This document shows positions 6,291-64,000 of a stretch of DNA of 64,000 nt, one piece after another; the first letter of the stretch is position 1; the number at the start of each line of letters is the position of its first letter. Source of the stretch: Epithemia pelagica (taxonomy: Eukaryota > Protista > Bacillariophyta); NCBI GenBank assembly GCA_946965045.2, contig OX337230.1, positions 4,030,001-4,094,000 of the forward strand. The letters are read 5' to 3'. A program made the translations under genes and the position numbers. The notes under the pieces were generated by a model. That model was not told where the DNA came from and did no database searches. It saw nothing but the letters and a program-made list of their open reading frames with translations.

Positions 6291-6483
6291 TCTACCTAGG
6301 CGTGCCACGCGTGACGACTATAGATGAACGCTTAAGGGAGGACGTCGACAATGCAAAACATCTACGTGTCACTCAAAGCATGAGACCCTGTTCTAGTTTA
6401 CCATGTCCGATCTTCAGAACGAAACTCGAATGCTTTGCGCCATGAAGTTTACCACGCCATTGATCGCCATGCTCATCCAACAT

Positions 6484-9022: not shown

Positions 9023-9152
9023 ATCGTGTCGAATAGCCGTCATTAGCGATTCATGGATAAGTCCTTTCAATTCCTCCATTTTGCTACGCGTTGCGCTCCA
9101 AGAACGAAGGGGCGGATCATCTGGATCTGAACTCGATGCCTTTTTTTTGGGT

Positions 9153-10817
9153 TCAAATGCGGTTTTCAGTTTTTCCAAGAAAGCAGACCGAATACTGCGG
9201 CAACGACTGCAAAGTATTGTCGCAATAGGTCTTATCATTTGACTGCATTTTCCCTTTGGGACCGTTCTGGGGGGAAGGAACAGAATTGGGGTCCGATTTG
9301 CTTGGTGTTTTTTTGCGCTTGTGCTCCCGCTTTAGCTCGTTTTCTACATTTGGGTAGGTAAGACGATTGAATTGCATTGCCTGCAATTTTACAAATCCAA
9401 AGTAGGACAGAGATTCTTTTGGTTGCAGAAACCATAGCTGTGGTGTCGCACCATCGTCGACCGCCTTGCATGTTTTCACAAACTCAAGAATCATCCATTG
9501 CTTCACAGGGTGGTTTTTCTCAGCAACTGTCAGTTGAAGAGCCGCAATGGAAAACATTTCTCTCCTTTTGATCATGATGATGGCGTCAATCGCAGCAAAA
9601 GTCTCACTTGTGGCTTTCGCAAACACAGTAAACTCTTCCGTACTATGTGCATCCAACTTGGCCTTTGCCTTTTTCGAGAAATCCTGCATTGTCGTAAACT
9701 CGATGACTTCAATTTTGGATGCCGATTCCTGAAGCAGCACTTGAACAGAGGGCTTCATGTGATCCACGGGAAGCTCTGAACCGACGATGGTTATGTGCGC
9801 TTGATCGTTCCGCATATTCCTTGTTAGCAGAGGCTCCCAAATCCAGCCACCAACGCTGCGTGCCTTCGGCTGTGCAAGCAGGTCTTCCATTAGCTTCTGA
9901 AGTTTATCATCCGAACGGGACTCCTCCTTTTCCAGCAGCGATCGCCCGATGTATGGCGAGGGGATCTGGAGCTTGAACTTATTTCGGAAGCTGTCTGTAG
10001 GGATCATGTGTCCAACAAGGCCGGGATACAGTTTTTGCCCAACCACAGCGGAATTCCCCTCATTTGTTGGAGAAGAATCGTCCAAGACAGAAAGATGGTT
10101 TACTAGCTTTTCCACTCCGTATATCGAAATAGCTCCATCCACCAGCTCCTGCGCCTTCTCTGGATTTTGAAGGCAAAGGCTTGGGACACCTCCCACATAA
10201 TAGAATGCGTCTTTCGCTTCGGTAACTGCTTCAGGGCTCTTGTTGGCTGCCATTTCTATTACCTCACGCTTGCTTGCTGAATCAATGTAACAAAAATTAC
10301 CTTTAGTATCACTCCAATTTTGCTGTTGCCGAAGCCTGCTCCATCGTTCTTTGTTCGCTGAGCTTACAATGAGAAGGAAGCCGGAGGGGAAACTTCGAAC
10401 ACCTCCTCGGCTGAGATCCACAATGTGAAGGGTCTTATATTCGCTTCTCGGTTGGCCAGCCGCAATTTTGTTGCCGCTCCACGTGTAATGGACTTCCCAA
10501 CCAAAAAGCTTTGCCATGAATAAACCAATGATAGCACCAAGAATTGACTTGCCGGTTCCCTGGACTCCAGTTAGTACCATTGTGCTCTTTTTCCGGTCAT
10601 CGTCTGGCTTTGCATTTGCGTACTCTTGATGAGCTTTCTCAAAGAACGCAATCGTTGAGCAAAGAATGTAGGAATAACAGTGACGCCAATAAACTGAGCG
10701 GATTTCATAGTCAAACCATTCCATGCGCTTCACTTGGATGAACCGCTTCTCATTGACTTTCAAAAGCGAAATATCTTGATCAAAGAATACTTGCATCGCA
10801 TTGATATCGTTATCCAC
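9153..10817 (-). CDS. CR/RHS-like P-loop NTPase plus C-terminal restriction-endonuclease-like domain (554 aa open frame; true 5' end unresolved)
   Basis: Walker A LTGVQGTGKS, Walker B-like LHIVD, YYVGGVP helix motif, and C-terminal FAAIDA...LQLTVAEKNHPV resembling CR/RHS nuclease domains. Confidence 0.75.
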   Translation of the reverse strand: MDNDINAMQVFFDQDISLLKVNEKRFIQVKRMEWFDYEIRSVYWRHCYSYILCSTIAFFEKAHQEYANAKPDDDRKKSTMVLTGVQGTGKSILGAIIGLFMAKLFGWEVHYTWSGNKIAAGQPRSEYKTLHIVDLSRGGVRSFPSGFLLIVSSANKERWSRLRQQQNWSDTKGNFCYIDSASKREVIEMAANKSPEAVTEAKDAFYYVGGVPSLCLQNPEKAQELVDGAISIYGVEKLVNHLSVLDDSSPTNEGNSAVVGQKLYPGLVGHMIPTDSFRNKFKLQIPSPYIGRSLLEKEESRSDDKLQKLMEDLLAQPKARSVGGWIWEPLLTRNMRNDQAHITIVGSELPVDHMKPSVQVLLQESASKIEVIEFTTMQDFSKKAKAKLDAHSTEEFTVFAKATSETFAAIDAIIMIKRREMFSIAALQLTVAEKNHPVKQWMILEFVKTCKAVDDGATPQLWFLQPKESLSYFGFVKLQAMQFNRLTYPNVENELKREHKRKKTPSKSDPNSVPSPQNGPKGKMQSNDKTYCDNTLQSLPQYSVCFLGKTENRI

Positions 10818-11741
10818 AGTAGTCCTCTCTGAGGAGGGGCGTCGCTACAGTCATTTGGTCATTCAACACAATACACAACATTTGTCTCATGGACAGTCCA
10901 TCCATTGTTTCATGCCGAAGCGGACGTGGTGGCAGTTTGCGGACGTGGGCTCGAGTGTAAACCATTGAGTTCTTTTCGAGGAGGTGGAGACTGCGAAAGT
11001 TCGGTAAAGTGATATTCAACATGACGGGACTCGAAGAAGTTCACTGTGTGCCCCTGTTTCGTGAAATACCTTCAACGAAAGTATGTGAACGACGGTTCAT
11101 CATTCCTCAATGACTTTGAGCAATGTTACGAGAGATGATTCGGAGGTATCAAATCTATCTGGATTGGATAAGTGGTACACCTATATTCTGTGCCATTCCC
11201 GTCTCGATCATTGTACCCCCACACTATGAGGTTCGATCCGTTCGGAACGGAATCGTTTCTTTGTGTATGCCAAAGAGAATTACTGGAAGGTAGTTCCCTT
11301 TGTCTCTTTAAAATCGTGAGATTAATGACTCTTTTTGGAGTAGTAACTACGAATCGCATCGTACATGGAAAATAGATTGACATCGACTACTACAATAATG
11401 TATACTTCACTCCCTTCCGACTTCAGTTTCCGATCCATTAGCCAAACGGAGAGCAGCAACAAAAGCTGCGTTTTGAGAGTGCTCTGAATGCGCCATTGAC
11501 AGTAAGTCTTCGCATAGGTAGCCCTCCGACATTTGCATGGCCTGTTCAACCAAGACCGTCTCTTTTGCCATTGTGCGGTTGGAACGCCGGTCCAGGGTTT
11601 CAATCGTTGTCCCTACTCTTGGTCCTTGTTGATAGCCAATGGGTGCTTCTTTGATACGGAATCGGTTCCGTCATCTGTACAGGTACCAGATAATTTAACT
11701 ACCACAACGAGCTTCGAGAAAAGATGGTTCGCCAAGAGTGT

Positions 11742-12614
11742 CTACCTCAAAAGCTCCATGATACCACTCCTCGCATGCAGCAATATCCCACTTCCAAGAC
11801 TCGCGTGGTCCGAAACACAGCTATCCACCATCATTCGAGTAATTTCCTCTTCTCGAAGCTTTCGCTTTTTCCCAGCTCTAGATGCTTCTGTTTTGATCTC
11901 TTGCGCTGTCTTGGTTGTGCTTACAGACTCTGTATGGAGGGCAACTGCTTTGTTTCGGAAGATGTATGGTCCACCGCAAGACCCCGGAAAACCTCCATTT
12001 TGGTACGTGAGGGTTTTGGAACCAATCACTCCGACAGATGCTTCCTTTTGCATTACGTGACATGTATCAAACTCTAGATCGTCGAGAAACAATTGCAGAG
12101 GACAATGGTAAATGTGGATCTTTTCAAGAGTAGCAGGGGTAGGAATGTCCGACTTGGAAGTGGCTAGCGGAATGGCGAAGGGCAGTGCTGGAGCTCCGTC
12201 GTGAAGCTTTAAGGATGCCCAATCAACAGGAATATTGTATGTGTGCACAGTGACAAATCTTGTTGGCGATTCTGCTGAAATTTTTCCATCCGACAATCTT
12301 CTGACAATTGTTGTGATCTTCAGGTCCAGGACCACCGAGTCGGCCTTTTCATCTCTCGACTTGACCACGACGTTGTGACATGCTGTCAACAAGAGCTTAT
12401 CGGAAATTGCAAATGCTGTTCCGATCGGCTCGGCGTCCGTGTCTTCTCCCCGATACAGAATGAAGACTCCATCTGCGACGTTTATGTGCTGCTGCTGCTG
12501 TTGTTGCTGGTGGGCGACGGCCGCAGAGGGTAGAATGAGGATGTTGTGTGACAAAAAACAACGAGACACAGAAAATCCATCTAAAACTACCAAAAGATAC
12601 GCATACAAACTCAC
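11742..12614 (-). CDS. Trypsin/chymotrypsin-fold peptidase with Cys at the nucleophile position; probably exon 2 of a CR-like gene whose exon 1 has been displaced
   Basis: GTAFAIS...LLTACHN (His), VDWASLKL (Asp), GFPGSCGGP (GxCGGP; TGC codon at 11978-11976), then AVALHTES. The upstream sequence at 12814-12770 resembles the CR-family intron. Confidence 0.75.
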   Translation of the reverse strand: MSLYAYLLVVLDGFSVSRCFLSHNILILPSAAVAHQQQQQQQHINVADGVFILYRGEDTDAEPIGTAFAISDKLLLTACHNVVVKSRDEKADSVVLDLKITTIVRRLSDGKISAESPTRFVTVHTYNIPVDWASLKLHDGAPALPFAIPLATSKSDIPTPATLEKIHIYHCPLQLFLDDLEFDTCHVMQKEASVGVIGSKTLTYQNGGFPGSCGGPYIFRNKAVALHTESVSTTKTAQEIKTEASRAGKKRKLREEEITRMMVDSCVSDHASLGSGILLHARSGIMELLR

Positions 12615-12730
12615 CTGCTGGATTTAATGAAAGGATGTGCAAGAGTAATGAAAGATAAGGTCGGCAATCAAAGGAAAATTGATGGAAAAGACGGTTGGTT
12701 GTGACGCATGGAACAAATTATGAGTGAGTT

Positions 12731-13407
12731 TCAATGGCTTTTCAAATTGGGAACAAAGAAAACAAAACATAGTTGTTGCTGTGGCATTGTAGCTGAATAC
12801 CAGCCGGCCCAGATCGCCGCAGAAGATGAAATAACGTCATCTATCGGACGGTCGGAGATAGAGACAGGGTGTGCGGAGGGCAATGCTCTAGGTAATGGTG
12901 CCTGCACGACACGCCCCAGATCGTCGATTCCAGGAACGGGTGGGATATTTTGACACCAAGCTTCCAATATTTCCTCAGATTGGATGTTGATTTGATCGTG
13001 CTGACGCGCGGCGAAGCCAGAGGCGGAGTTATGATTGCTGGGTACCTTGGCATACACAACAAACTATCTAAGAAAAACAAATAATGTGTCATGACATTGA
13101 CATACGGACCATCTCTTCTCCATACCAGCTCGTCCAGATAATTGATGAAATAGACAAAGAGATTCGAATCTCAAAATCGAATACAGATACACAAATAGAA
13201 ATTCAAACTTACTGGTGCGATTGCCGCCTGGATAGGTGGACCCTTCCTGTATGTGCCGCCGGGCACGAGGGATGCAAAGCCGCCTATTTCTATGCCATTG
13301 GTATCTTCAAGGCACTCCACGCCCTTTCGATTTATGTAGCCGTTGTATTCTTGCTGATTGGAGAGTAGTAAAGGTTTGCCATCAACAGTGATTTGCTTGC
13401 CCTCCAT
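12731..13407 (-). pseudogene. Chimeric truncated duplicate of the CR REase-kinase gene
   Basis: Exon 1 (13407-13213) and the intron are copies of 8249-7906. Exon 2 follows the kinase gene only to DDVISSSAA (12815), then switches to unrelated intron-like sequence and stops. Confidence 0.85.
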
Positions 13408-14794
13408 GGTGTTGTTCCAATCTTTCTGTGGTACTCCCAATTACCTTTTCACCAAAAACCTATTCATTTCGCCGACTCACGAGGGAGTGTGAGGTTTCCT
13501 ATCTCCTATCACCGAACTGCTGACGTTCCCTACTCTTCCTTCATATTCCCCTACAATACGACTCATTCTACATCTCTCGGTTTCAGTTGTACTGTTTTCA
13601 TTTTTTTGACGTCACTGTAGAGATTAAAGTATTCCCATGTTCGTCTGAGTTCAGTAAGGGCTGGGTAAGCCGATCCATGTTCGGCTAAGTAGGCTCAGTA
13701 CAAAAGCTACGTAGAGTACATAAAATCAGATAGTACACGTCACGCCGGAAATGGTCGGAATTTCAAAAAAATGCAAAAACGCTCGACAATGATGGCGAGA
13801 TCCGGTGACGCCGTATGCATTCACCCATGCATCGCATAAACATCCAACCACCGTTAGTCCTTTGCCTTTACCTTTTAAATTGTTGTCTGAAATAACAGAA
13901 GATTTGCCAAGTTGGCTGAAAAGGTACGCTCATTTTTCTGCTGCGATGAAATCGAACGACCGCCCTAACTCATTCATTTTTCAAGGGTGCCTGAATCAAA
14001 GTGAAAGCGAAGTTGCTCTAGTAGTAAAGATTCTTATTGTAAAAGTGATTCAGGCAGGCTCAATTGTTCAGGAAGTTATTGCCATGGGGGTGATGACTTC
14101 CATCATTGTCGAGCGATGGCTTCCAATTTGCATTGTTTCTCGTGGCAGCACGTTTTCAATTTGCGACTCGATGTGACCATCCGCCCCACTTCGTACACAG
14201 ACGAAAATAGTACTACGTAGCTTTTGTACTGAGCCTACTTAGCCGAACATGGATCGGCTTACCCAGCCCTTATGAACGGGACGGGTGGGCCGTAAGGGGG
14301 TATGTTATCGGGCGCGCGGAGCATGGGCGGAGCATGGATATGGGGGGAGCAATGCATGCTCCACGATGCATGCTCCGCGCGTCTATATTATCGGTGGGCG
14401 GATGCAGAGATGCGGAGCATGCGCGGCGCGCGCGCTCAAAATCCTCGACCGTCACGGAAACGCGTATGGGTCGCCTTAAGTATGGAATCGAGCAACTTTG
14501 GGAAGACGATGGCAAGCAAAGGGGTGGTTTCCGGACACAATAATCATTCCCTTTATAGACTACTTATCATTTAGAGTATCCATTGGATATTTCACCTGTT
14601 GTTCTGTTGGCCCTACGAGCTCATGTGGGAAAGACACGTCAATTTCCATGCTCTATGGAAACACAACCTCCACCATGAGGATGGAAAAGACTCCTAAAGA
14701 GCAAGGCAGCAACAGTTGGCCGACTATATGTACTTGTCTACAATACTAGTGCCTAGATAGACTCTGTCATCGCTTTTGTCCATGACAAATCCAT
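12815..14794. repeat. Segmental duplication copy B (partner 7657-9022), interrupted by a MITE
   Basis: Direct alignment with copy A. The MITE empty site ttcagTAtgaacgg is visible at ~8494-8507. Confidence 0.95.
13657..14270. mobile_element. 614-bp MITE with perfect 58-bp TIRs and TA target-site duplication
   Basis: TIR AGGGCTGGGTAAGCCGATCCATGTTCGGCTAAGTAGGCTCAGTACAAAAGCTACGTAG at both ends, TA at 13655-56 and 14271-72, and the empty site in the duplicate copy has a single TA. Confidence 0.95.
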
Positions 14795-48902: not shown

Positions 48903-50906
48903 ACGGCGTGTCCGACGCGGTCGTGGTTCTGGATCCGGCGGTTCCTCGTTTCTAGGACAAGAACCTAGTCTACTAAGCGATTGCCGATCGAGAGGCGCCA
49001 GTCAATCTATTAGATTTGGATCAAGAGACACTGTGTGGCTTGGTATGGACAGTGGCTCGCCCATACAACTATATCCGTGACGGGGGCATTCTTCAAGGGC
49101 TCGCCGGTGCAATGGTCAAAACCATTACACCACATCCCGAAACCACAGAAGGATATGGTAGGGTCAACGACGACGAATGGCGGAGCTTGAATGGCGTCGA
49201 ACATTGACTGGGGCCCTGCGGAATGAAGGTTGTGGATCGAAAAGAACCACAGTCCAGACAGAAGACCCATTACAGCAAAAAATCAACCATAAACGGCAAT
49301 TGAGACTTAAACAGCAAGGAAGAAAATCCCAGAATCAGCCCCACCCTTGGATCCCCTACATGGGACGTTGATCTTAGCCCCAAAATGAAACGAAAACAGG
49401 TGGATCACTTTGAAGAACGAGGCCCAGAAAGGAGAGGCGGCGGAAGCCGTTGCAAAAGGCATGAAAGAGGCCTTTTCTTTCATGCCTTTTGCAACGGCTT
49501 CCGCCGCCTCTTTCGGGGCCTCGTTCATGCCGCTCCCAAAACGGACTGTGCCTCGCCCCTACAACTATCGGTGACGGGGGCATTCATTCAAGCGCTCTCA
49601 TTTGCCAAAACTAGGATATGAAACGACGAATGGCGGAACTTGAATTGCGTCGGACATTGACTGGGGCTCTGCGGGATGAAGGTTGTAGATCGAGGGCTCA
49701 GAAACGAACCACAGTCCAGACAGAAGACCCATTACAGCAAAAAATCAACCATAAACGGCAATTGAGAGTTAAACAGCAAGGAAGAAAATCGCAGAATCAG
49801 CCCCACCATGGATCCCCTACATGGGACGTTGATCTCAGCCCCAAAATGAAACGAAAACAGGTGGATCACTTTGAAGAACAAGACCCAGAAAGGAAAGGCG
49901 GGGGGAAACCGTTACAAAAGGCATGAAAGAGGCCCATAAAGAGGCAGCGCATGCCGTGCTTCCGACGTCTCTTTATAGGTCTCGTTCATTCCTTTTGCAC
50001 GGATATGCCTCTACCACAATGGACCAACACAAAAAGTCACTGATTGAGGGGCGCGCGCAAGTTTCATTCTAGATTTGGAATGTGGCTGGATACGGACTGT
50101 GGCTCTCGCCCATATGACTATCAGTGAAGTGTGGGCATTCCAGCGCTCTCGCCGGTGCAGTTGTCCAAACCACCACACCCTATCCGAGCTATTGTAGGGT
50201 GTGGTGCTTGTGATAAATGCCCAGGCGAGGAAACCGGATCAGCTGCAACGGGAAACGACTTTTGGCGGAGGTTCCATGGACGAGAAACGGAACCAACCAG
50301 TTCCAATGGATTCCTCACAACTCATGGAGAAGCATCCGATGCCCGAATAGCAATGGCCGAGTATTTGATGGGACAATGCTGGCAATTCATGGATTTGTGA
50401 ATGGTGCCTTCCCAACGGGCACTCCGAATTGCTCTCAAACTGCCAGAACAAACGTTGTGTGTTGTGCAATGAAATGATTCGAGTACAATGAGATGATTCC
50501 AGCATCTCATTGTACTGGAATTATTTCATGGCGCAACGCATTGCACAACACAAAGTTGACATTTCCAGGAGATGGATTCAATCCATTGAAAAATGGTTGT
50601 GCAACGAGACGAAACAAGGTCGGCACAGTAGCGCGCGCGAACCCGGAAATACCAGTGCTTTGTTGTGCCGTATCATCTATGGAGCCCGATGGAGTAACGC
50701 CATTTTGTCGGTAGAGGTTCCTTTATCTGTTTTGTTTTCGATTGACCGGTAATCCTACGACCGACAGACACCTCCGTTCTCAAACAAACATCCATTTCTC
50801 TCGTGAAATCAGTCGTGCTTCCAGTCCGCACCCATCAGCATCAGCGCATCACAGCGGAGCACAGCAAACCACCGAATCATAAATTCTGCAGTCAACGTTT
50901 GAAACC

Positions 50907-51389
50907 ATGAGCATGACACTGAAAGAACAAGCATGGCAGTCGGGTCTTGTCCTTTTGGACGAGACAGCAGAATGGAATGAAACCAAATGGCCTCCTCTTG
51001 TGGGTGGATGGCGTGACGATCATGCTACAGTCGTACTTGATCATTCCAATAAGGACAACGATACCAACAACAAGGGGCAGACGGTTGTCGTGTTGGGAGG
51101 ACGAGAACGAGGCCAAGGCGTTGTCAATTCCGTTCTTGTATTAAATTTAACAGATCCAAATAAGCAGTGGCGAGAAGGACTGCCCATGAATAAGAGTCGT
51201 GAAGGACATGCCGTTGTTGTGTGCAACGACGGTGTCTACGTGATGGGAGGATACAACGGAGGATCTTTGGTTTGTATCGAACGAATTGATTCCAATGATT
51301 TACTACAAGCAGCTTTAACAGAAATACCAGTGCTTTGTTGTGCCGTATCATCTATGGAGCCCGATGGAGTAACGCCATTTTGTCGGTAG
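50907..51389 (+). pseudogene. 3'-truncated Kelch gene copy
   Basis: Kelch N-terminal part to LLQAALT, then reads into the next repeat unit. Confidence 0.85.
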
Positions 51390-51581
51390 AGGTTCCTTTA
51401 TCTGTTTTGTTTTCGATTGACCGGTAATCCTACGACCGACAGACACCTCCGTTCTCAAACAAACATCCATTTCTCTCGTAAAATCAGTCGTGCTTCCAGT
51501 CCGCACCCATCAGCATCAGCGCATCACAGCGGAGCACAGCAAACCACCGAATCATAAATTCTGCAGTCAACGTTTGAAACC

Positions 51582-52064
51582 ATGAGCATGACACTGAAAG
51601 AACAAGCATGGCAGTCGGGTCTTGTCCTTTTGGACGAGACAGCAGAATGGAATGAAACCAAATGGCCTCCTCTTGTGGGTGGATGGCGTGACGATCATGC
51701 TACAGTCGTACTTGATCATCCCAATAAGGACAACGATACCAACAACAAGGGGCAGACGGTTGTCGTGTTGGGAGGACGAGAACGAGGCCAAGGCGTTGTC
51801 AATTCCGTTCTTGTATTAAATTTAACAGATCCAAATAAGCAGTGGCGAGAAGGACTGCCCATGAATAAGAGTCGTGAAGGACATGCCGTTGTTGTGTGCA
51901 ACGGAGGGGTCTACGTGATGGGAGGATTCAATGGAAGATATTTTGATTGTATGGAACGAATTGATTCCAATGATTTACTACAAGCAGCTTTAACAGAAAT
52001 ACCAGTGCTTTGTTGTGCCGTATCATCTATGGAGCCCGATGGAGTAACGCCATTTTGTCGGTAG
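51582..52064 (+). pseudogene. 3'-truncated Kelch gene copy
   Basis: Same structure as 50907-51389. Confidence 0.85.
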
Positions 52065-52256
52065 AGGTTCCTTTATCTGTTTTGTTTTCGATTGACCGGT
52101 AATCCTACGACCGACAGACACCTCCGTTCTCAAACAAACATCCATTTCTCTCGTAAAATCAGTCGTGCTTCCAGTCCGCACCCATCAGCATCAGCGCATC
52201 ACAGCGGAGCACAGCAAACCACCGAATCATAAATTCTGCAGTCAACGTTTGAAACC

Positions 52257-53384
52257 ATGAGCATGACACTGAAAGAACAAGCATGGCAGTCGGGTCTTGT
52301 CCTTTTGGACGAGACAGCAGAATGGAATGAAACCAAATGGCCTCCTCTTGTGGGTGGATGGCGTGACGATCATGCTACAGTCGTACTTGATCATCCCAAT
52401 AAGGACAACGATACCAACAACAAGGGGCAGACGGTTGTCGTGTTGGGAGGACGAGAACGAGGCCAAGGCGTTGTCAATTCCGTTCTTGTATTAAATTTAA
52501 CAGATCCAAATAAGCAGTGGCGAGAAGGACTGCCCATGAATAAGAGTCGTGAAGGACATGCCGTTGTTGTGTGCAACGGAGGGGTCTACGTGATGGGAGG
52601 ATTCAATGGAAGATATTTTGATTGTATGGAACGAATTGATTCCAATGATTTGCTACTGCAATCATCTTTTACAACAAGCAGTACGCATGAGAGTTATTGG
52701 ACGACATTAAACTGTCGATTGTCAACGGGACGATATGGATGTTGTGCCGTTGCGGTGCACAATCGATATATTGTTGTAATCGGTGGATGTAACATTCGTT
52801 ATTTGTCGTCGGTCGAGATTAATGATACCACGAACCACACTGTCATTGAGGGACCATCCATGAACGTTCATCGATCATCTTGTTCCAGTGCGGTCGTTGG
52901 CCACCGCATCTTTGTCGTTGGAGGATATAATAACAATCACGGTAATCTTGACTCGGTGGAGTATTTAGACTTTACAGTGCCAAGTGAGAACGAGGAGACG
53001 AAGGTGGAAACGGCTGCTTCAGTGACTTATTCCTCCTCGTCCTCTTCCTCTTGGACGACTCACTCGGATCTGGTGCTTTCCGAGCCACAATTTTGTTGTT
53101 CCGTGGTTGCTGAGGGATCTTGTCTGGTGGTGGCGGGAAACAATCGAACCATGCAAGTCTTGGACACGCACCACAATCGCGTGTGGAATCTCCCAGCACT
53201 CGTAAATCGACATCGCTGCAGTATGGTGACGGTTGCCAATCAAGTTGCCATTATTGGTGGATATGAGAATCCAACCTGTGCGACACTGCCACTCATGGAC
53301 AAGAATTCGTGGTGCTTTCAACGACTCTGTGAGCAGCATATCCAAACGCATGTTCTCATTCGTGAGAAGAAGGAGTGGGTATGA
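52257..53384 (+). CDS. Stand-alone Kelch-repeat (beta-propeller) protein, 375 aa
   Basis: Repeated VVVLGG, VYVMGG, IVVIGG, IFVVGG, LVVAG, VAIIGG blades with downstream Y/W. No BTB, F-box or signal peptide seen. Confidence 0.9.
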   Translation: MSMTLKEQAWQSGLVLLDETAEWNETKWPPLVGGWRDDHATVVLDHPNKDNDTNNKGQTVVVLGGRERGQGVVNSVLVLNLTDPNKQWREGLPMNKSREGHAVVVCNGGVYVMGGFNGRYFDCMERIDSNDLLLQSSFTTSSTHESYWTTLNCRLSTGRYGCCAVAVHNRYIVVIGGCNIRYLSSVEINDTTNHTVIEGPSMNVHRSSCSSAVVGHRIFVVGGYNNNHGNLDSVEYLDFTVPSENEETKVETAASVTYSSSSSSSWTTHSDLVLSEPQFCCSVVAEGSCLVVAGNNRTMQVLDTHHNRVWNLPALVNRHRCSMVTVANQVAIIGGYENPTCATLPLMDKNSWCFQRLCEQHIQTHVLIREKKEWV

Positions 53385-53917
53385 GTATTTGTTGGGAGAA
53401 TCCTGGCAATTCATGGATTTGTACATGGTGCCTTCCATACGGGCACACTCCGAATTGCTCTCGAACTGTCGGAACAATGATATGTTGTGTTGTGCAATGA
53501 AATGCTTCGAGTACAATGAGATGCTCGAATCATCGTGGAATCATTCATGGCACAACACAAAGTTTACATGGAGATTCCATCATGGTTATTCCATCATGGT
53601 ACACAGTATGTGAGTTGGGATGGTGTGGTGGTGCATTGTCAATGACGTGACAAATAGGATACACAAGATATAACTAAGGAGTTAACCTATGATCTCCTTT
53701 CTAAAAGCTTCCTAAAAGCTCGTGACGACAACATGGCAAGTATTATTGAAAAGTAGAATTTCGCGGATAGTGCTTCCTCAGCTTTGGACGTGATATATGC
53801 AACCTGTTGCACACTACCTGCCATCCTCCTCGTTACCACCCTGTCAGACATGTGTATTGGTCCTGACTTAGTATTATTGCTTACGAATTGATTTCGAGGT
53901 TGTGTAGGATGTTGCAT

Positions 53918-55054
53918 TCACAGTGGGGATACCAACTCCTTCTTTTCACGAATGAGAGCATCCGTTTGGATATGTTTCTCACAGAGTTGACGAAAACACC
54001 ACGAATTCTTATCCATGAGTGGAAATGACGCACAGGTCGGATGATCAAATCCACCAATCACGGCAACTTGATTGGCAACAGTCACCAAACTGCAGCCTGT
54101 ATGGTAGTTTTCGAGTGGTGGGAGATTCCACACGTGGTTGTGGTGTGTATCCAAGATTTCCATGGTTCGATGGTTTCCCGCCACCACCAGACAAGATCCC
54201 ACGGCAACCACTGAACGACGCATTTCTGGCTCCGAAAGCACCAGATCAGAGTGAGTCGTCCAATAAGAGGACGAGGAAAAAGTCACTGTAGCAGCAGCAG
54301 TTTCCACCTTTGTCTCCTCGTTCCCACTTGGCGCTGCAAAGTCTAAATACTCCACCGAGTCAAGAATATGGTTGTTGCTAAGGCCTCCAACGACAAAGAT
54401 GCGGTGACCAACGACCGCACTGGCACATAATTCTCGAGGAACGTTCATGGATGGTCCCTCAATGACAGTTTGGTTCGTGGTATCAATAATCTCCACCGAG
54501 GATAAGTCATCTCTCGCCCTGTCCTTTCCACCCATTAAAACAATATATCGATTGTGCACCGCAACGGCACAACATCCTCTTCGTTGTGTTGATAGTCGAC
54601 AATTCAATGTTGTCCAATTGATCTCGTGAGTGGTGCTTGTTGTTAAAGCTGCTTGTAGTAAATCATTGGAATCAATTCGTTCGATACAATCCAAAGATCC
54701 TCCGTTGTATCCTCCCATCACGTAGACACCGTCGTTGCACACAACAACGGCATGTTCACGGCGTCTCTTTTTCATGGCTGGTCCTTGTCGCCAGTGCATG
54801 TTGGATTCTGCTAAATTCAATACAAGAACGGAATTGACAATGCCTTGACCTTGTTGAACTCCTCCCAACACGACAACCGTCTGCCCCTTGTTGTTGGAAT
54901 CGGTGTCCTGATCGGGATGATTCAGTACGACCGTAGCATGATCGTAACGCCATTCACCCACAAGAGGAGGCCAATCGGTTTCATTCCATTGCGCTGTTTC
55001 GTCCGGTAGGAAAAGCCCCGACTGCCATGCTTGTTGTTTCAGTGTGGTGGCCAT
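53918..55054 (-). CDS. Stand-alone Kelch-repeat protein, 378 aa
   Basis: Paralog of 52257-53384; start taken at MATTLKQQAW (ATG 55054) by homology. Confidence 0.9.
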   Translation of the reverse strand: MATTLKQQAWQSGLFLPDETAQWNETDWPPLVGEWRYDHATVVLNHPDQDTDSNNKGQTVVVLGGVQQGQGIVNSVLVLNLAESNMHWRQGPAMKKRRREHAVVVCNDGVYVMGGYNGGSLDCIERIDSNDLLQAALTTSTTHEINWTTLNCRLSTQRRGCCAVAVHNRYIVLMGGKDRARDDLSSVEIIDTTNQTVIEGPSMNVPRELCASAVVGHRIFVVGGLSNNHILDSVEYLDFAAPSGNEETKVETAAATVTFSSSSYWTTHSDLVLSEPEMRRSVVAVGSCLVVAGNHRTMEILDTHHNHVWNLPPLENYHTGCSLVTVANQVAVIGGFDHPTCASFPLMDKNSWCFRQLCEKHIQTDALIREKKELVSPL

Positions 55055-56881
55055 TGTTCCTTCCAACAGGAAGCCGTCGAGCAAAAGTGTTGGATGAGCA
55101 AATCGCGTGCAAGCTTTTATAGTGTGGTTGAGAATGGAGGTCTCGGTTCCTCGTATACTATCGAACACAGCAGGATGGAAATGGACCGAATGGGCTCCAT
55201 ACCAAAACTGATGATGCGCAAAAAGGCACTGGTATTTCCGGGTTTACGTCCAACACGTACGGCGGACGGACAAAGGCGAACGCCGGGGGGGGGGGCGAAC
55301 AACACGAAACACCCCTCGTTCCACCCTAAATCTCAATATCTTCTGGGCAGTGCCTCCGGGCGCCCCCACATTTTTTGGAGGAATGCCGTCACACTTTTTT
55401 CCCTTCTCCGTTTCGGCAGGAGCACAAAACAACAACAACACCCACACCATGGGACGCTATTGTCTTGAGAATGACGACCACAATGACACTAGGGTTACGA
55501 CGAATGGTGGAAGAACTTGGCCCTTTGTGGCACAAGAAGGAGAGGAAGGATCTCTCGTCCCATATGGTATGGACGAATGCACGGGGGAGGCACTCGGATC
55601 AGCCCCCACAGGAGACAAACGACGACGAATGGCGGAGCTTCCATGGCGTCGGACATTGACTGGGACCCTGCGGAATGAAGGTTGTGGATCGAGGGCTCAG
55701 AAAAGAACGAACCACGGTCCAGACAGAAGACCCATTTTAGGAAAAAAATCAACCGCACACGGCAATTAAGCGAAACAGCAAGGAGTAAAACCCCAGCATC
55801 AGTAGCCTGGATCCCCTATACATGGGACGTTGATCTCCGCCGCAAAATGAAACGAAAACAGGTGGAGCACTATGGAGAACGAGGCGCAAAAAGATGCGGA
55901 GAACGTCGTTGCAAATGCCGTTGCATTTGCAACGGCTTCCGCCGCCTCTTTATGTGCCTCTTTCATATGCCTCTACCAAAATTGACCAACGCACACAAGT
56001 CACGGATGGAGGGGTACATTCTAAATTTGGATCGAGACACTTGTGGCTTGGTACTGTGTGTGTCTGTGGTTCTCGCCCATATGACTATCAGTGACGTGTG
56101 GGCATTCCAGCGCTCTCACCGGTGCAGTTGTTCCAACCACCACACCCTATCTCCGAGCTATTCTGGGGTGTGGTGCTTGTGACAAATGCCCAGGTGGGGA
56201 ACCCAGATCAGCTGCCACAGGAAACGACTTTAAGCGGAGGTTCCATGGACGAGTGACGGAACCAACCAGTTCCAATGAATTCCTCGCAAATCATGGAAAA
56301 GTAACAAATGCTATATCAGCAATGGCTGAGTATTTGTTGGAACAATGCTGGCATATCATGGATTTGTGCATGATGCCTTCCCAACGGGCACTCGGAATTG
56401 CTCTCAAACTGCCAGAACAAACGTTGTGTGTTGTGCAATGAAATGATTCGAGTACAATGAGATGTTGGAATCACCTCATTGAACTGAAATCATTTCATGG
56501 CACAACGCATTGCACAACACAAAGTTGGCATTTCAAGGAGCGCTGCGATGGACTCAATCCATCGAAAATGGTTGTGCAACGAGACGAAACAAGGTCGGCA
56601 CAGTAGCGCGCGCGAACCCGGAAATACCAGTGCTTTGTTGTGCTGTATCATCTATGGAGCCCGATGGAGTAACGCCATTTTGTCGGTAGAGGTTCCTTTA
56701 TCTGTTTTGTTTTCGATTGACCGGTACTCCTACGACCGACAGACACCTCCGTTCTCAAACAAAACCATCCATTTTTCGTGAAATCAGTCGTGCTTCCAGT
56801 CCGCACCCATCAGCATGAGCACATCACAGCGGAGCACAGCAAACCACCGAATCATAAATTCTGCAGTCAACGTTTGGAACC

Positions 56882-58024
56882 ATGAGCATGACACTGAAAG
56901 AACAAGCATGGCAGTCGGGTCTTGTCCTACCGGACGAAACAGCGCAATGGAATGAAACCAATTGGCCTCCTCTCGAGGGAAGATGGCGAATCGAACATGC
57001 TTCGGTCGTACTGAACCATCCCGATCAGGACAACGATACCAACAACAAGGGGCAGACGGTTGTCGTGTTGGGAGGACGTCAACGAGGCCGACGCTCTGTC
57101 AATTCCGTTCTTGTATTAAATTTAACAGATCCAAATAAGCAGTGGCGAGAAGGACTGCCTATGAATAAGAGTCGTGAAGGACATGCCGCTGTTGTGTGCA
57201 ACGGAGGGGTCTACGTGATGGGAGGATTCAATGGAGGATCTTTGGATTGCATGGAACGAATTGATTGCAATGATTTGCTACTGCAATCATCTATTACAAC
57301 AAGCAGTACGCACGAGAGTTATTGGACAAAATTGAAATGTCGATTATCAACGGGACGATATAGATGTTGTGCTGTTGCGGTTCACAATCGATATATTGTG
57401 GTAATGGGTGGACGGGCCAGGGGGGAAAGCTTGTCGTCGGTGGATATTCTTGATACCAGTGACCACACTGTCATGAAGGCACCATCCATGACTGCTCCAC
57501 GAGTATCTTGTTCCAGTGCGGTCGTTGGCCACCGCATCTTTGTCGTTGGAGGCAATAATTTCAATCACGGCATTCTTGACTCGGTTGAGTATTTTAACTT
57601 TGCAGTGCCAAGTGAGAACCAGGAGACAAAGGTGGAAACTGCTGCTGCTACAGTGACTTTTTCCTCGTCCTCTTATTGGACGACTCACTCTGATCTGGTG
57701 CTTTCGGAGCCAGAAATGCGTTGTACAGTGGTTGCCGTGGGATCTTGTCTGGTGGTGGCGGGAAACCATCGAACCATGGAACTCTTGGATACACACCGCA
57801 ACCACGTGTGTAATCTCCCACCACTCGAAAATCGCCGTACAGGCTACAGTATGGTGACTGTTGCCAATCAAGTTGCCATTATTGGTGGATATGAGAATTC
57901 TACCTGTTTGACACTGCCCCTCATGGACAAGAATTCGTGGTGCTTTCAACGACTCTGTGAGCAGCATATCCAAACGGATGTACTCATTCGTGAGAAGAAG
58001 GATTGGGACAATCCTGGCAATTAA
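56882..58024 (+). CDS. Stand-alone Kelch-repeat protein, 380 aa
   Basis: Paralog with the same MSMTLKEQAWQSG start and six GG-type blades. Confidence 0.9.
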   Translation: MSMTLKEQAWQSGLVLPDETAQWNETNWPPLEGRWRIEHASVVLNHPDQDNDTNNKGQTVVVLGGRQRGRRSVNSVLVLNLTDPNKQWREGLPMNKSREGHAAVVCNGGVYVMGGFNGGSLDCMERIDCNDLLLQSSITTSSTHESYWTKLKCRLSTGRYRCCAVAVHNRYIVVMGGRARGESLSSVDILDTSDHTVMKAPSMTAPRVSCSSAVVGHRIFVVGGNNFNHGILDSVEYFNFAVPSENQETKVETAAATVTFSSSSYWTTHSDLVLSEPEMRCTVVAVGSCLVVAGNHRTMELLDTHRNHVCNLPPLENRRTGYSMVTVANQVAIIGGYENSTCLTLPLMDKNSWCFQRLCEQHIQTDVLIREKKDWDNPGN

Positions 58025-58644
58025 TGGATTTGTGCATGGTGCCTTCCAACCGGGCACACTCCGAATTGCTCTCCAACTGTCGGAACAATGAAATGTTGTG
58101 TTGTGCAATGAAATGATTCGAGTACAATGAGATGCTCGAATCATCGTGGAATCATTTCATGGCACAACACAAAGTTGACATGGACTGTAATGCAACGACA
58201 CACAACCGTGACGGCATCCACTTTGGTTGTGTCGACCCAGCGAGATTCCATCATGGTGATTCCATCATGGTACACAGTATGTGAGTTGGGATGGTGTGGT
58301 GGTGCATTGTAAATGACGTGACAAATAGGATACACAACATAACTAAGGAGTTAACATGATCTTCCTAAAAGCTCGTGACGTCAACATGACAAGTATTGGA
58401 AAGTAGAACTTCACTGATATTGCTTCCTCAGCTTTTGACGTGGTATGCAACCTGTTGCACCGTAAGTGCCATCCTCTTCGTTGTACCACCATGTCAGACA
58501 TGTGTATTGGTCCTGACTTGGTATTGCTTACGAATTGAGTTCGAGGTTGTGCAGCATGTTGCATTCCCATTGGGGATACCCACTCCTTCTCATCACGAAT
58601 GAGAGCATGCATCCGTTTGGAGGTTGCTCACAGAGTTGTAAATC

Positions 58645-58856
58645 TACTTTAATAGCCAGGGTGGACGAGGAGGAGCTAGGGTGTGAGGAGTGGCTTAACT
58701 CCGAGAAGGGCAATAGCGACGAGGAGTGGACTGCCCCTGTGAGATCCGCGTAAGCGGATCGAGGGGGCAGTCCACGACGAGAAGCTATTGCCCGACGAGG
58801 AGTTTAGCCACGAGGAGCGCCCTGCGACGAGGAGTCCCCCCGGGGCTATTAAAGTA
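58645..58856 (+). other. 212-nt rod-like hairpin with GTAA tetraloop and purine-rich symmetric internal loops (structured RNA or ssDNA candidate)
   Basis: Stems tactttaatagcc/ggctattaaagta, tggcttaactcc/ggagtttagcca, gggcaatagc/gctattgccc, tggactgcccct/agggggcagtcca and gatccgc-GTAA-gcggatc. Loops are built from CGAG(G/A)AG on both arms. Confidence 0.8.
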
Positions 58857-59263
58857 TGTTAGCTTCCTTTGTCACGAGGAGTCCTGCCCGCGCACCCTAG
58901 GTAATTTTCGTTCTTCCTAAGTGATCGTTTCTCTCAATTGATACTTAGTAATCGCTGGCCTATTTAGCTTTCTACATTCACGCCGGCACAATGTTAGTTA
59001 GGTATCTTGCTTGCGTGCTTGCGCACCTCATCCGATTGCTCGCGTTGCTCAAATAGCATCATACTGTCGTGCTTGCGCAACAAATCCGATGGCTCGCGTA
59101 AGTCAAATAGGTACATAGGACAAGTCGTGTTGTTTACATAGGCGTGACACACTAATACATAAGTAATTTCTATTTATTACTTACATCCCCCACCCCCCCC
59201 AACTGACAATCCCACGATTCTCTCGTACAGACGACACATTTTGTGCAACGACAACACAACAAC

Positions 59264-62200
59264 ATGATGAGAAAAGGAAGACAACCGACCATGGTGACTC
59301 CTCCTCCTTCTGGAGGAGTTGGTAGTGCTTCCAAACAGGTTGATTGTGAAGTCGTAGACCTTTGCACTCCTCCTCAAGTAATAGATCTTTGTAGTTCGTC
59401 TTCCTCGTCTAGTTGCTCATCAGACTCTTCGGGGGAAACTCTTGTCTTTATCACAAAGGACAATGCAACAGACGAATGGGATGGTAATCTCTTTCGCCGT
59501 TTGGAGATCTACTACGACTGCACTGGGTCATCCGACGACTTCAGCGCCTGTAGTTCCGACCCTTGGATCATGGAAATCCTACAGAGACGGTAAGTTTTCG
59601 CCGCGTTTCCCACCATTGTCGTGTGTTTTCCTTCCAGACGTCTTCCCAAAATTTCAAACCACCTGCCGTGCGCGCGCGCATGGTCGAGTCGCTGTTATGT
59701 TTCCTACTGATTCCTACGTACAGCCTACGTGTCCGCACATTGTTGCAAGTGTCACCGTCTTCACTTTCCTCACCCTCATTTTTCATTGTGCACTGTTTTT
59801 TCATCGTCGTTTCGCAGCCCGACCATGGCGACTCGACAATCTTGCCGCCAAATGGAGCGGGCAGCTGCGAGAAACAACGACGACACCACCAACTCAACCA
59901 ATAACGTCAACCCGTACCGCAATTCCAGGCGCCCACCCGACAACCGTGCGAATCGTCCACCTTTGACAGAAACAAATATTCCTCCTTCCCGAAATCGTCG
60001 TCAACAACAACAGGACGATAACCAAGCACCTGAGCAATCAAAGTAAGTACGAGTGTGTTCTACTGTTTTCTATCGTTATCTGAGTTGTAACTAACCACCG
60101 TGTTTCCTTATACCCCTTCAGCATTGTTGCGAGGCCTGATCCTTCTTCCCGTCGTCGTCAACTGGAACAACTTGACCTTCCCAACCATGCGAACGACGCC
60201 CTTCTGAATGCTGCCACGGTTGTTGAATCATGCAAAGTAGATACCAAGTTGGTCTCCCAAGCATTGGTGAAGCGGATGTATTTGACATGGGATACCGAAA
60301 CAGGCACCATGCGGATTGGTGAGGCTTCATTCAACCCGCCCACCATGGACTCGTCCTGTGCACGATCGTTGGCTGCCTGGAGCCAGTATTGTCGCCTCTC
60401 TCCCACCATCTACGGGAACAGTACCTTCACCATCCGAGACCTTACCGGATGCAAGGCTTCCTACGATAAGGAAAAGTCGGCATCGGTCAACAAGTTTCTC
60501 GAATGCTTGCAAAAGCATCACGAGATGCACTTCCTTTTGGAGATTCTTGAAGACATCGACGAGTTGTCTGGTGCACAAACACCAACCCCACTTCTTTTCC
60601 TAGCACTTCGAGGAGTCAAAACTCCATCCAAGTTGACATTGTTGAATAGCGCCGTAATGGTTTTCTTGGTGAACCACCGAATGCGTGGATTCAACCCGGA
60701 GACAGACGACGTGGAAGATCCCAAGTATTTCTTCCAACCCAACACAACAATGAAGATGCTGAACCATCTCTTTGCTCTTCTACGAACACATGGCATCGTC
60801 ATCGCCCAAAGCGATCTTCGGAACGGGCATGGCAACTACCATGCCTACCTTGCCGACATTTGGAACAAGGCAGCCCTCGTCCGTCCCGAATTCGGCCGCC
60901 TCCCGCAACGTGCACCCACGGCATTCGACGATGAAGAAAAAATGCGGACGTGCGAGCCAGAGCTTCGGCCGTTCGAACCCGGCCAATATGCGACGGCCTT
61001 GAGCATGGGAGTGTACAAATCGTCACGAGATTTTGGCCTTCGGGGACCAGAAGTAAGTTGTTGTTGTTGTGTTTGTTGACTGTTGTCGTTGTTGCTGTTG
61101 TCTAACAGTTTGGTTGTTGCATGTTGTTGTCTCCAGATAAGATTATTTAAAGTTTCGGATCTTATCTTTATTGCACGTCTAGACAAATCATACGGAATGT
61201 TGGCTGGGCTTCCCGCGATTATTCTGAAAGAATCTGTGCTTGAGAAATCGTCGCATCTCGCGACGAACAATCTCGCCTTCGATCGAGTCGCGAACGACAC
61301 CCGAGACTCGACCCATATGGTAATCGAAAACCCTGACGACAAATTCTCGACGTACAAGATCCTGACGCACCTCATGAAGGTGGGTCACCCGCCAGGGTGG
61401 CAAGGTCTGTTGTTTCTGGAGCAGGTACCCGCCAAGCACATGGCGGCCCGAAAGGATGGTGCGAAGCACCTCGGTTGGACGGAGTTAGTCCCTGAAACTT
61501 CGCAGACCGATGCGGATGGATCGGGCTTCAAGTGTGCGGGTAGATTGGGCTCAAACTGGCCGAATAGGAATGCCCGTCAACTTGCCATTCGTTGCAAGTT
61601 TGACAACGCCGAGAAAGTAACGTTTCGGACCGGACGACGAACTGGCATCTCAAAAGTTGCCAACTGTGGAGTACCCCAAAAAGCCTCCGATTCCTTCGCC
61701 CGTCATAAGTCATCTTCAGTCAACGTCTTGTACCAAGACTTGACAGCGGAGAACCACCAACGGACCATAACGGCAAATTGGTACCGGCCACCCGAAAAGA
61801 ACGACGAGGAATCCGACAGCAACAAAGAAAACGTGAAGAAAGGTACGTACAGCGGTCATGACATGATCGTTACTACTATTTACTCTCTCACTGTATTGTT
61901 TTCTTGTGATTCAGACGACAAAAAGAAGAAGAAGAACAAGAAGAAGAAGAAAGAGTCGTCTTCCCCCTCATCGTCATCGTCGTCGTCGTCTACAGACATC
62001 GATACATTTCTCCAAAAGGCTAAGAAGAAGATTCTTCGTCGTAAGGCATTGGAGAAGCTGAAGGCTTCGAAGGAGGATGATTCCTCAATCGAAGATGAGA
62101 ATTCGTTGGCTCGCATCTATCGTCTCTTGGACGACAAGCCATCCAAGTCGTCCAAGTCCAAGTCGAATGGTACGTTGATTGTTGTGTTTGTGTTTCATAA

Positions 62201-63307
62201 CTTTTTATCGTTGCATCTTCTCACTTTCTCATGTTCTTTTTATCAGTCTCGGAATCCAAGAAGAAACGCAAGAAGAAGAAGAAGAAGACGAGTAGGAAGT
62301 CAATCGCATACTCTTCGTCCTCGTCGTCATCGTTGTCTGGTTGCATCGAACTTCTTTCTCATCATCGCAAGAAGAAAAAGATGACTCCCCCCAACACCAT
62401 CACTGGTACGTTGATTGTGTGTGTTTTTTGTTGATTGTTGGTTTGTTGTTCTCATGTGATGTTTTCCCTTTCTTTCATTGTTGTATTCTCAGTTCCACCA
62501 CAACCGTCGTCTCTTGTTCCGCAGCTTTCCCCCTCTCAATCCACGCAACCTCCACCACCAACAGCAACTGTGAAACCGCCGCCACCAACAGCAACTCTGA
62601 AACCGCCGCCACCACCATCCTCAACAACAGACCATCTTGCACCAGCTCAAACCAACGGAGCTTTGCAACCAGGTCCACCACCAACAACAACCACCATCGT
62701 CGAGGCGACTGTGCAACCTGCACCAACAACAACCACAACAACCGCCATCGTCGAGGCGACTGTGCAACCAGCACCAACAACAACCACAACAACCGCCATC
62801 GTCGAGGCGACTGCTCCAATTGCGCAACCACCACCAGTTCCACCGCCACCCATTTCCGCTACGACCCCCGCCATGCCACCACCAACAACAACAACAGCAC
62901 CTACCGTGCCAGCACCAGCTCCTCCGCCAACGTCGACGGAACACCAACCATACCACCACCAACCATACCACCACCAAGAGTTTCGCACTGGTTCCGGCGG
63001 CCACAACGACGGTGGTCGCGACCGGTCGGTTGATTGTCGTGTGGAGGAGCACCATCGTGTTGCTTACCATCGCAACAACTGGTACCCCCCTCCTCCACGG
63101 TCGGATACACCACCACCATACCATCATCACCATTCCTCACGAGGATACAATCATCACCGCCCATACACGCCATCGCCACCGCCGTATTACCATCACCACC
63201 ACCGTGGCAGTGGATACACCCCTCCACCTCCCCCTCCACCTCGTCACCATCATCGCGGTTCACATCATCATCATGGAAGTAGCCACGGATATGGCTACAA
63301 CTACTGA
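59264..63307 (+). CDS. Tyrosine recombinase, 7 predicted exons, ~1138 aa
   Basis: Exons 59264-59589, 59818-60042, 60122-61052, 61137-61842, 61915-62169, 62247-62405 and 62493-63307. All introns are GT-AG with matching phases, total 3417 nt, open. Motifs: FGLRGPE|IRLFKVSDL (box I Arg), FRTGRRTGIS (box II Arg), FARHKSSSVNVLY (His and Tyr). Confidence 0.8.
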
Positions 63308-63780
63308 AATACCGTAGTCTTCGGTACGTTTGCTGTTGTTATTGCATTCTTGGTTGATTGTTGTATCGTTGTCTTACCATTCTATCACTCTTTTTGACAG
63401 ATTGATATCGCTTTTGCTTTTTTGCATGTCTTTTGCAAGGTGGCCTCTAGCTTGATGTCTCGATAGGTACGTTGAATTTCCCGAACCGCCTACCGCTCCA
63501 CTTTACGCACCACTTTCTCACACGATCTTGATTTTTGCTATTTTGTCTTGGCATGAAATTTCGTGGTGCATTTCGCTTTGCTACTGAATTTTCCGTGTCG
63601 TGTGTACGCTTTGTGTCGTGTGTTTGTTTGTTGCGCCCTGCCTCGTGATTCTTGTTTCCATGTCTGTGTTTCCGTTGCTCTATCTACTTGATTCGTGTTG
63701 TTCTCGCCATTTCCGTTGGTGCACCTCTTGTTCGCTTTTTCCTGTTAATGTGTTTGTTCTCTCGTTGTTTTCCCTACGGA

Positions 63781-63832
63781 TTTCCTGGGTGTACTACTTT
63801 TCCTGGGTGTGCTACTTTCCTGGGTGTGCTAC
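63781..63832. repeat. Three copies of a 17-18 bp unit near the right end of the Crypton-like element
   Basis: tttcctgggtgt(a/g)ctac x3. Confidence 0.85.
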
Positions 63833-64000
63833 TTTTTCGTTTGGGCTATTCTAATTTTTCTACACTAAAATAAAAATCAAAGTACAGTAATTTTTCGGGC
63901 TTATGTAGAGTGGGGAGTAGGTGGGGGAGGGGTAGGACGACGAGTGAGAAAGGTAGACGAAAACACCACGTATTCTTGTCCATGAGTGGGAATGACGCAC

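Follow-up and report, generated by a model that had tools for sequence, protein, structure and literature searches.

A conserved rod hairpin with periodic tandem G.A mismatches at the left end of a Crypton-like tyrosine-recombinase element in a diatom

A 64,000-nt stretch of the genome of the diatom Epithemia pelagica (contig OX337230.1 of assembly GCA_946965045.2, positions 4,030,001 to 4,094,000 of the forward strand; hereafter the window) carries a long fold-back sequence on the same strand as a gene for a tyrosine recombinase (YR). A preliminary description of this stretch noticed that the interruptions of the stems are occupied by the same purine motif on both arms, and proposed a selected RNA or single-stranded DNA structure of a eukaryotic YR transposon. 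What does such a structure do at the end of a mobile element, and in which nucleic acid does it fold? The structure in question is the following:
58645 to 58856, plus strand: rod hairpin of 212 nt, with stems of 6-13 bp, tandem G.A loops of the GAGGA/GACGA type and an apical loop GTAA.

The plus strand of this segment folds into a single unbranched rod of -138.2 kcal/mol with RNA parameters, compared with -70.3 +/- 4.5 kcal/mol for 200 dinucleotide shuffles (z -15.1), and the 212-nt fold-back is thereby borne out as one rod. Alignment of arm against arm gives 74 Watson-Crick pairs, 21 G.A oppositions, 2 G.T wobbles, 7 other mismatches (3 G.G, 2 A.A, 1 C.T and 1 T.T) and 4 gaps, which recovers both the tandem G.A/A.G zipper and the two wobbles described before. 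The symmetric loops on both arms read GAGGA, GACGA or GACGAGGA. There are 11 copies of the motif ACGAGGAG in the window where 1.7 would be expected; 6 of them lie within 58665-58881, all on the plus strand. A looser motif, CGAG(G/A)AG, starts at 58666, 58684, 58702 and 58720 on the left arm, with a spacing of exactly 18 nt, and at 58760, 58778, 58796, 58811 and 58828 on the right arm; one further copy outside the hairpin starts at 58875. With these starts mapped on each arm, the repetition of the purine motif on both arms is confirmed. The GTAA cap closed by a C-G pair is present in the window as described, but the apical loops of other lineages read GTCA or GCAT and the GNRA type is not conserved. 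With this qualification, and one on strand specificity given below, the preliminary description was correct at every point checked. The 18-nt period was also considered as a coding repeat (GAC-GAG-GAG, Asp-Glu-Glu), which was ruled out by stops in all three frames in every lineage. Rfam 15 gave no RNA family match for the hairpin; the sole match in the element is a chance one to CrcZ (E 0.45) and lies elsewhere in it.

The hairpin stands at the left end of an insertion, of which the following parts are needed here:
58639 to 63956, plus strand: whole element, 5,318 bp, inserted in a Kelch paralogue without target-site duplication.
58639 to 58644, plus strand: terminal hexamer TAAATC of the left end; in the extended rod, pairing is weak around the joint G^TAAATC.
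60249 to 61079, plus strand: recombinase exon or exons, N-terminal part of the catalytic domain, with an R-x-x-E-V box that is invariant in the alignment.
61140 to 61811, plus strand: recombinase catalytic exon with RxxR, RH and Y.
63862 to 63910, plus strand: right-subterminal conserved block, ACACTAAAA..GTACAGTAA..GGGCT.TAGTA, common to the element of the window and its relatives L001, L002 and L003.

The bounds of the element come from alignment with an uninterrupted Kelch paralogue at 53961-53992, and one boundary G is ambiguous. The left junction is at 58638/58639, and the hairpin therefore starts 6-7 nt inside the element, in agreement with the 7 nt given in the preliminary description. 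The left junction reads TTG^TAAATC, the right one GGTAG^ACGAAA and the empty site TTG^ACGAAA, with one G in common, and no target-site duplication is present around the hairpin. A contig joint, 58637>63956, has precisely the empty-site sequence; it was dropped as proof of a polymorphic insertion because the paralogue at 53961-53992 contains identical sequence. The element disrupts one paralogue of a Kelch-repeat gene array, which occupies 50100-58640 of the window in direct and inverted copies and includes three exact 675-nt tandem units (50646-52295).

The element gene is multi-exon and lies on the plus strand, and the start of its first conserved ORF is ~400 nt downstream of the hairpin. Between the two, at 59015-59100, there are two ~32-nt direct repeats (GTGCTTGCGCA..ATCCGAT.GCTCGCGT) ~54 nt apart, which are also found in the related copy L001 and may be promoter or protein-binding elements. 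The RxxR, RH and Y residues of the recombinase are nearly invariant among 24 aligned homologues. A profile of this block aligns to XerC-like and XerA chains at E ~1 only, and Pfam Phage_integrase gives a weak match in distant homologues only. Language-model neighbours of the recombinase fall into Phage_integrase and DUF3504 clusters. An AlphaFold (AF2) model of the catalytic exon (pLDDT 81) matches Cre (Z 6.7), an archaeal Xer (Z 5.9) and the DUF3504 protein QRICH1 (Z 5.6); its top matches are tyrosine-recombinase or topoisomerase IB folds only, and QRICH1 is the top Foldseek match. The ORFs of the element gave no match to reverse transcriptase (RT), RNase H or any other Pfam family (E<=0.01-0.1), a Pfam search of the same ORFs found no Rep/HUH nuclease domain, and DIRS-type genes (RT/RNase H, methyltransferase) and inverted LTRs are absent from the element. 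The remaining 1.8 kb of the element is low-complexity sequence. The last 1.2 kb of the coding region (62100-63320) is of this kind, rich in Lys/Ser and then in Pro/Thr/His, with 51-nt repeats; several of its frames are open, and no family matches it.

Cryptons carry 4-6-bp terminal direct repeats, TATGG in CryptonS, and CryptonS is already known from stramenopile (diatom) hosts (Kojima & Jurka 2011, PMC3212892). This hallmark is not found here: a single G is shared between the ends, as it is in the other insertions. The element resembles Cryptons in having a YR only, with no RT or LTRs; Cryptons also lack terminal inverted repeats, and a circle route has been proposed for them (Goodwin 2003; PMC3212892). 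Consistently, QRICH1, one of the best structural neighbours of the model, is a Crypton-derived protein. The element is a Crypton-like tyrosine-recombinase transposon without the textbook 4-6-bp terminal direct repeats.

An exhaustive HMMER search with the catalytic exon returned 88 proteins, and the contigs of nine were fetched. All long contigs of relatives come from one ENA assembly, ERZ21939226. Loci L005, L006 and L009-L015, on metagenome contigs too short upstream, were left out of the hairpin comparison, which covers these copies:
L001, hairpin at ~3441-3656: recombinase 87% identical to that of the window.
L002, hairpin at 3808-4007: recombinase identity 50%.
L003 and L004, hairpins at 3591-3789 and 3599-3797: recombinase identity 44%; the two copies are 98.7% alike.
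L007 and L008, hairpins at 3843-3985 and 3691-3865: recombinase identity 40-42%.
L017 and L018, hairpins at ~4400-4560: recombinase identity 46%; the two copies are 99.2% alike.

A rod of the same design is present in all nine intact related elements fetched, ~2.4 kb upstream of the catalytic exon and on the same strand; these belong to five lineages, whose independence is limited since the relatives all come from one assembly or organism. Wherever two copies set the boundary, the rod starts 6-10 nt inside the left end, and in all 10 loci examined it lies this close to the left end of a YR element. L001 is the same element with the same ends in different flanks. The recombinase homologue at L016 (5900-8400, 36% identity), from which the RxxR box has been lost, lacks a hairpin upstream; it is a decayed or else a domesticated copy. 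At the nucleotide level, the hairpin is better conserved than any other part of these elements. Between lineages, BLAST matches are confined to the hairpin and one short block at the right end (L002 against L003); the right-subterminal block lies at 8657-8705 in L001, at ~7727-7787 in L002 and at ~8007-8065 in L003. The pattern of stem pairs of the conserved core had no match in metagenome contigs or in viral contigs.

The stem sequences diverge between lineages yet remain complementary, and RNAalifold finds changes on both sides in 18 of 71 pairs (window, L002 and L003/4). The covariation check proposed in the preliminary description was thus run on the collected copies, and compensatory changes exist; the hairpin, whose absence from other copies had been named there as evidence against a selected structure, is present in the same position in nine relatives. 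These results support a fold under selection in a eukaryotic YR element, which on comparative grounds would be a strand-specific single-strand structure.

The mismatches have a regular chemistry. In a script-based arm alignment pooled over the window, L002, L003 and L008, there are 278 Watson-Crick, 79 G.A, 7 G.T and 16 other oppositions, so that G.A accounts for 79 of the 102 non-Watson-Crick ones (77%). The G.A mismatches are arranged as 5'-GA-3'/3'-AG-5' tandems. The common loop is GA-N-GA on both arms, with a middle pair that is usually G-C or C-G (GAGGA opposite GACGA) and covaries between the two. Since the middle base is normally paired, the "loops" are two purine tandems flanking one normal pair, often in a CGAG context. 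CGAG is the classic context for sheared tandem G.A in both RNA and DNA. SantaLucia and Turner, and Chou, Cheng and Reid, are said to have found pyrimidine-GA-purine tandem G.A unusually stable in RNA and DNA.

Except in the core of L001, the purines of the mismatches lie on the recombinase-coding strand in every lineage. With purine pairs on the coding strand and C/T mismatches on the other, only one strand would form a continuous rod and the duplex would make a poor cruciform. The strand-specific fold proposed in the preliminary description stands as to the side of the purines and under RNA parameters, where the minus strand is weaker than the plus strand (-113.6 against -138.2 kcal/mol). It does not extend to DNA energy parameters, which give almost no asymmetry (plus -64.0, minus -60.1), nor to the L001 core; the computed asymmetry hinges on how a parameter set scores G.A, because the RNA set rewards it and the DNA set gives near-equal values.

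A quasi-palindrome of this length might instead be a passenger without function, kept by templated repair of its arms, or a separate fold-back or MITE-like repeat at the end of the element. We regard this explanation as highly improbable, and the L001 copy bears on it directly. At L001 3487-3608 the hairpin core is inverted relative to that of the window; the stem there is perfect over 28 bp, the gene strand carries pyrimidine loops, one loop pair has turned perfectly paired, and there are 8 C.T oppositions on the plus strand. A single replication template switch reproduces this arrangement, leaving at stem 4 of the right arm, copying the left arm inward through the apex and returning at stem 5. 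When this switch is applied to the window, the identity of the left 292 nt with L001 rises from 87.6% to 96.3%; the two copies are 85.8% identical over the 5' 3.1 kb as a whole and 77.5% over the last ~950 bp at the 3' end. Template switching is a known mutational behaviour of quasi-palindromes. The inversion is read as a derived mutation in one copy. A parvovirus-like flip/flop was ruled out for L001, in which only the inner part is inverted and one loop has been perfected non-reciprocally. L001 shows that template switching works on this palindrome, as the passenger explanation has it, and its core with pyrimidine loops means that a copy can exist without full strand specificity. However, given such a homogenising force, it is all the more telling that the purine loops persist elsewhere. 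Templated repair perfects the arms, as in L001, and would erase the same-strand purine loops, yet these are kept in five lineages. Because it would also render the loops complementary, it cannot explain same-strand purines on both arms.

Word depth concerns the same explanation. Over contigs of three runs of the organism, the summed word depth of the hairpin bin is ~8,000-14,000, and that of zero-mismatch single-copy interior contigs is ~70-105. The hairpin bin is thus at ~80-130 times the single-copy level and the interior of the element at 1-5 times, so that many hairpins are unattached to this particular interior, and solitary or non-autonomous copies may exist. However, the last bin (63839-64000, comprising the last ~118 nt of the element and 44 nt of Kelch flank) also has a high depth of 5,700-9,000, which is what non-autonomous derivatives or sister families would give, and not a hairpin on its own. 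The excess depth at the ends indicates that roughly a hundred related ends of either kind exist. The position of the rod 6-10 nt from the left end, its strand and the junction-spanning helix described below are all conserved, which likewise speaks against a passenger. In the same data, one contig of run X2 lacks 58 nt (58716-58775) between direct CGACGAG copies with a 7-nt overlap, so that the hairpin tip is removed, and one contig of run X1 (58788-58888) steps back by 101 nt. Slippage between the direct motifs may have given rise to both as variant copies, or they may be artefacts of assembly.

A second pairing, which the preliminary description did not notice, involves the right end of the element. 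Two further segments take part in it:
58857 to 58922, plus strand: post-hairpin segment, which is complementary to the right end and prolongs the 3' arm in the manner of an internal complementary region (ICR); 58857-58890 is best supported.
63897 to 63956, plus strand: right end, which pairs with 58857-58922 on joined ends; its CGACGAG at 63938-63944 faces the CGAGGAG at 58875.

The termini are not inverted repeats of each other. The right 45-60 nt are instead complementary, in inverted orientation, to an internal segment that begins some way in, ~220 nt from the left end. When the two ends are joined, as in a circle, the predicted fold reaches -198.4 kcal/mol for the window and -195.4 kcal/mol for L001, compared with -171.1 and -174.8 kcal/mol with the genomic left flank, and 63925-63956 pairs with 58857-58890. 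A compensatory G-C to C-G change is seen in this helix between the window (TAGGA/TCCTG) and L001 (TACGA/TCGTG). In L003/4 the junction helix is built of 11 perfect base pairs, a single G.A tandem and another helix. In L017/18, the right end and the post-hairpin segment are recovered by BLAST as a 93% match in inverted orientation, and the junction fold gains ~41 kcal/mol over the control. The junction-spanning helix is therefore present in the window, L001, L003/4 and L017/18, which represent three lineages. In all six loci compared, no other 45-nt window of the element pairs as well with the post-hairpin segment as the right end does. For the element of the window this duplex has -48.4 kcal/mol, the best of 121 such windows (next -39.1), with a modest margin over composition-matched shuffles (z ~-3.5); for L017 it has -64.5 against -31.5 kcal/mol for the next best.

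The hairpin thus forms the inner two-thirds of a ~330-nt rod. Because the outer rod forms only when the right end lies beside the left end, the 3' arm and the next ~35-65 nt together are a region complementary to both adjoining termini. Such a region is known from DIRS-1: its ICR, the complement of the two termini placed next to each other, is essential, and the element has single-stranded DNA intermediates (PMC7192593). This DIRS-like feature is present in the element of the window and also in L003/4 and L017/18. At the joint itself the 5' arm is weakly paired or looped, with strong helices on either side. The joint forms a small dyad in the window and L001 (GTAG^TAAAT-CTAC) and a palindrome or small dyad in L003/4 (G^TAATATTAC).

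The rod could also be a structure of RNA, located in the transcript of the element on the strand of the recombinase gene, where it would control expression of the recombinase, serve the protection or localisation of the RNA, or bring in a protein. The purines always lie on the coding strand, RNA parameters give a large asymmetry (-138 against -114), CGAG-context tandem sheared G.A is a classic RNA motif, and the distance of ~400 nt to the first conserved ORF start would suit a leader. We nevertheless consider a transcript structure unlikely. Scanning ribosomes should be blocked by a hairpin of -138 kcal/mol in a 5' leader. No RNA run that holds the sequence was found, the only runs that hold it look like genomic DNA with contigs of up to 509 kb, and no Rfam family matched. 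The covarying pairing of the right end with the post-hairpin segment points to the joining of ends, which is impossible through RNA for an element without RT.

Alternatively, the sequence could act as duplex DNA. The ten direct CGAGGAG/CGACGAG copies would then, like the arm-type sites of lambda attP, be accessory sites bound by the recombinase or by a protein of the host, and the complementary spacers would be inverted protein-binding sites or would aid cruciform extrusion in a supercoiled circle, with no single-stranded stage. The motif is kept as sequence beyond what the geometry of the mismatches demands, the inner core of stem, motif and stem is identical between elements whose recombinases are 50% identical, and the left-arm spacing is exactly 18 nt. 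The joint dyad of the window and L001 resembles a classic core site, and judging from their sequence the dyads of both the window/L001 and L003/4 joints could also act as ordinary duplex core sites. However, the stems differ from one another, each occurring exactly twice and mirrored about one centre, and they covary between lineages, which sites bound by a single protein would not do. Covariation as G-C or C-G is also seen at the middle base of the loops, and 5x5 mismatches every ~10 bp would presumably be unfavourable for cruciform extrusion. We therefore assign the duplex explanation a low probability.

The polarity of insertion is relevant here as well. In six of six independent insertions (the window, L001, L003, L004, L017 and L018) the element keeps its own first bases at the left, and its last G runs directly into unrelated target at the right without duplication. 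Such insertion in one polarity is expected if the top strand only is exchanged, and under a staggered double-strand exchange over a heterologous overlap each insertion would come out this way with a chance of only one half; six of six has a probability of ~1.6% under this 50:50 model, which is weak statistics. At L018 8872-8973, a second hairpin-bearing element begins 59 nt past the right end of the first, at the end of the contig, which suggests clustered insertion.

With the anatomy, conservation, covariation, strand bias and junction-spanning complementarity observed here, we favour, with moderate confidence, a reading in which a diatom Crypton-like YR family has the hairpin as its conserved, cis-acting left end, which serves as a strand-selective, single-stranded scaffold, probably of DNA, for the end and the circle junction. 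We infer that the molecule is DNA, single-stranded in vivo and bound by protein, and that one strand is exchanged. In the mechanism that we propose with this reading, the coding strand would fold once single-stranded, and the purine tandems would let it do so alone, with the cruciform disfavoured. The rod would bring the ends together, either in an excised circle or in an integrated strand that folds on itself. The rod would then hold both ends or present the circle joint as a quasi-duplex recombination site, and would offer its purine-zipper modules and invariant inner core to the recombinase or a partner protein. The recombinase would exchange the coding strand only, and replication would finish the event. 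A bolder version, which we put forward tentatively, is a eukaryotic YR transposon that moves altogether through a folded single DNA strand, with a 3' arm that would splint both ends.

Such a single-strand route has bacterial parallels. In the integron attC site, acted on by IntI, and the attP(+) site of CTX phage, acted on by XerCD, an imperfect palindrome on one strand folds and thereby reconstitutes a recombination site. Non-Watson-Crick features set the strand choice, one strand is exchanged and replication finishes, with no duplication and little need for homology. These bacterial sites are 60-150 nt long, are conserved in structure rather than sequence and have extrahelical bases, whereas the predicted diatom rod is much longer and eukaryotic, with tandem G.A and a core of invariant sequence. 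The IS200/IS605 and Helitron/Replitron elements also use strand-specific subterminal hairpins as recognition elements and insert without duplication. However, their hairpins are ~20-40 nt and are used by an HUH nuclease, and here there is a YR and no HUH ORF. DIRS-1 shares with the present element an internal segment that is the complement of the circle junction, in an element that encodes a YR. As retrotransposons, DIRS elements encode RT, RNase H and a methyltransferase and have inverted LTRs; the ICR is situated close to the right one. In contrast, the diatom element has no RT, the complement lies directly beside the left end and so makes a hairpin, and it has periodic G.A tandems. Compared with Cryptons, it has one shared G and a ~330-nt purine-zipped rod that spans the joint. 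The tandem sheared G.A motifs of CGAG sequences and of centromeric and parvoviral purine hairpins have the same 5'-GA-3'/3'-AG-5' arrangement in a pyrimidine-GA-purine context. Known examples are isolated motifs or simple repeats, whereas the diatom rod has a periodic series of them in a covarying 100-bp helix at the end of a transposon. A full-text literature search for tandem or sheared G.A hairpins in transposons gave nothing relevant, and the Crypton papers PMC3212892 and PMC13465315 (2026) report no hairpin, palindrome or structured end. The class of the element is thus known, and the end structure and its junction-spanning logic appear to be undescribed.

The window contributes a further copy with an exact empty site, a template-switch account of the inverted variant, the lineages, a mismatch census and a depth estimate. 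The way in which Cryptons move is not known to have been demonstrated. They have been described as lacking defined end structures (PMC3212892; PMC13465315). A large, conserved, strand-asymmetric end with the joint inside it makes the choice between a duplex circle and a single strand testable. A natural long helix with periodic tandem G.A, of which one strand is foldable, is also of interest for nucleic-acid structure and for the design of strand-selective recombination substrates. The logic of the DIRS ICR in an element without reverse transcriptase bears on the proposed Crypton origin of YR retrotransposons. If the proposed single-strand route is true, this family would provide the first eukaryotic analogue of integron attC and CTX-phage recombination, as well as an RT-free counterpart of the DIRS ICR, and would be a mechanistic bridge between Cryptons and DIRS retrotransposons.
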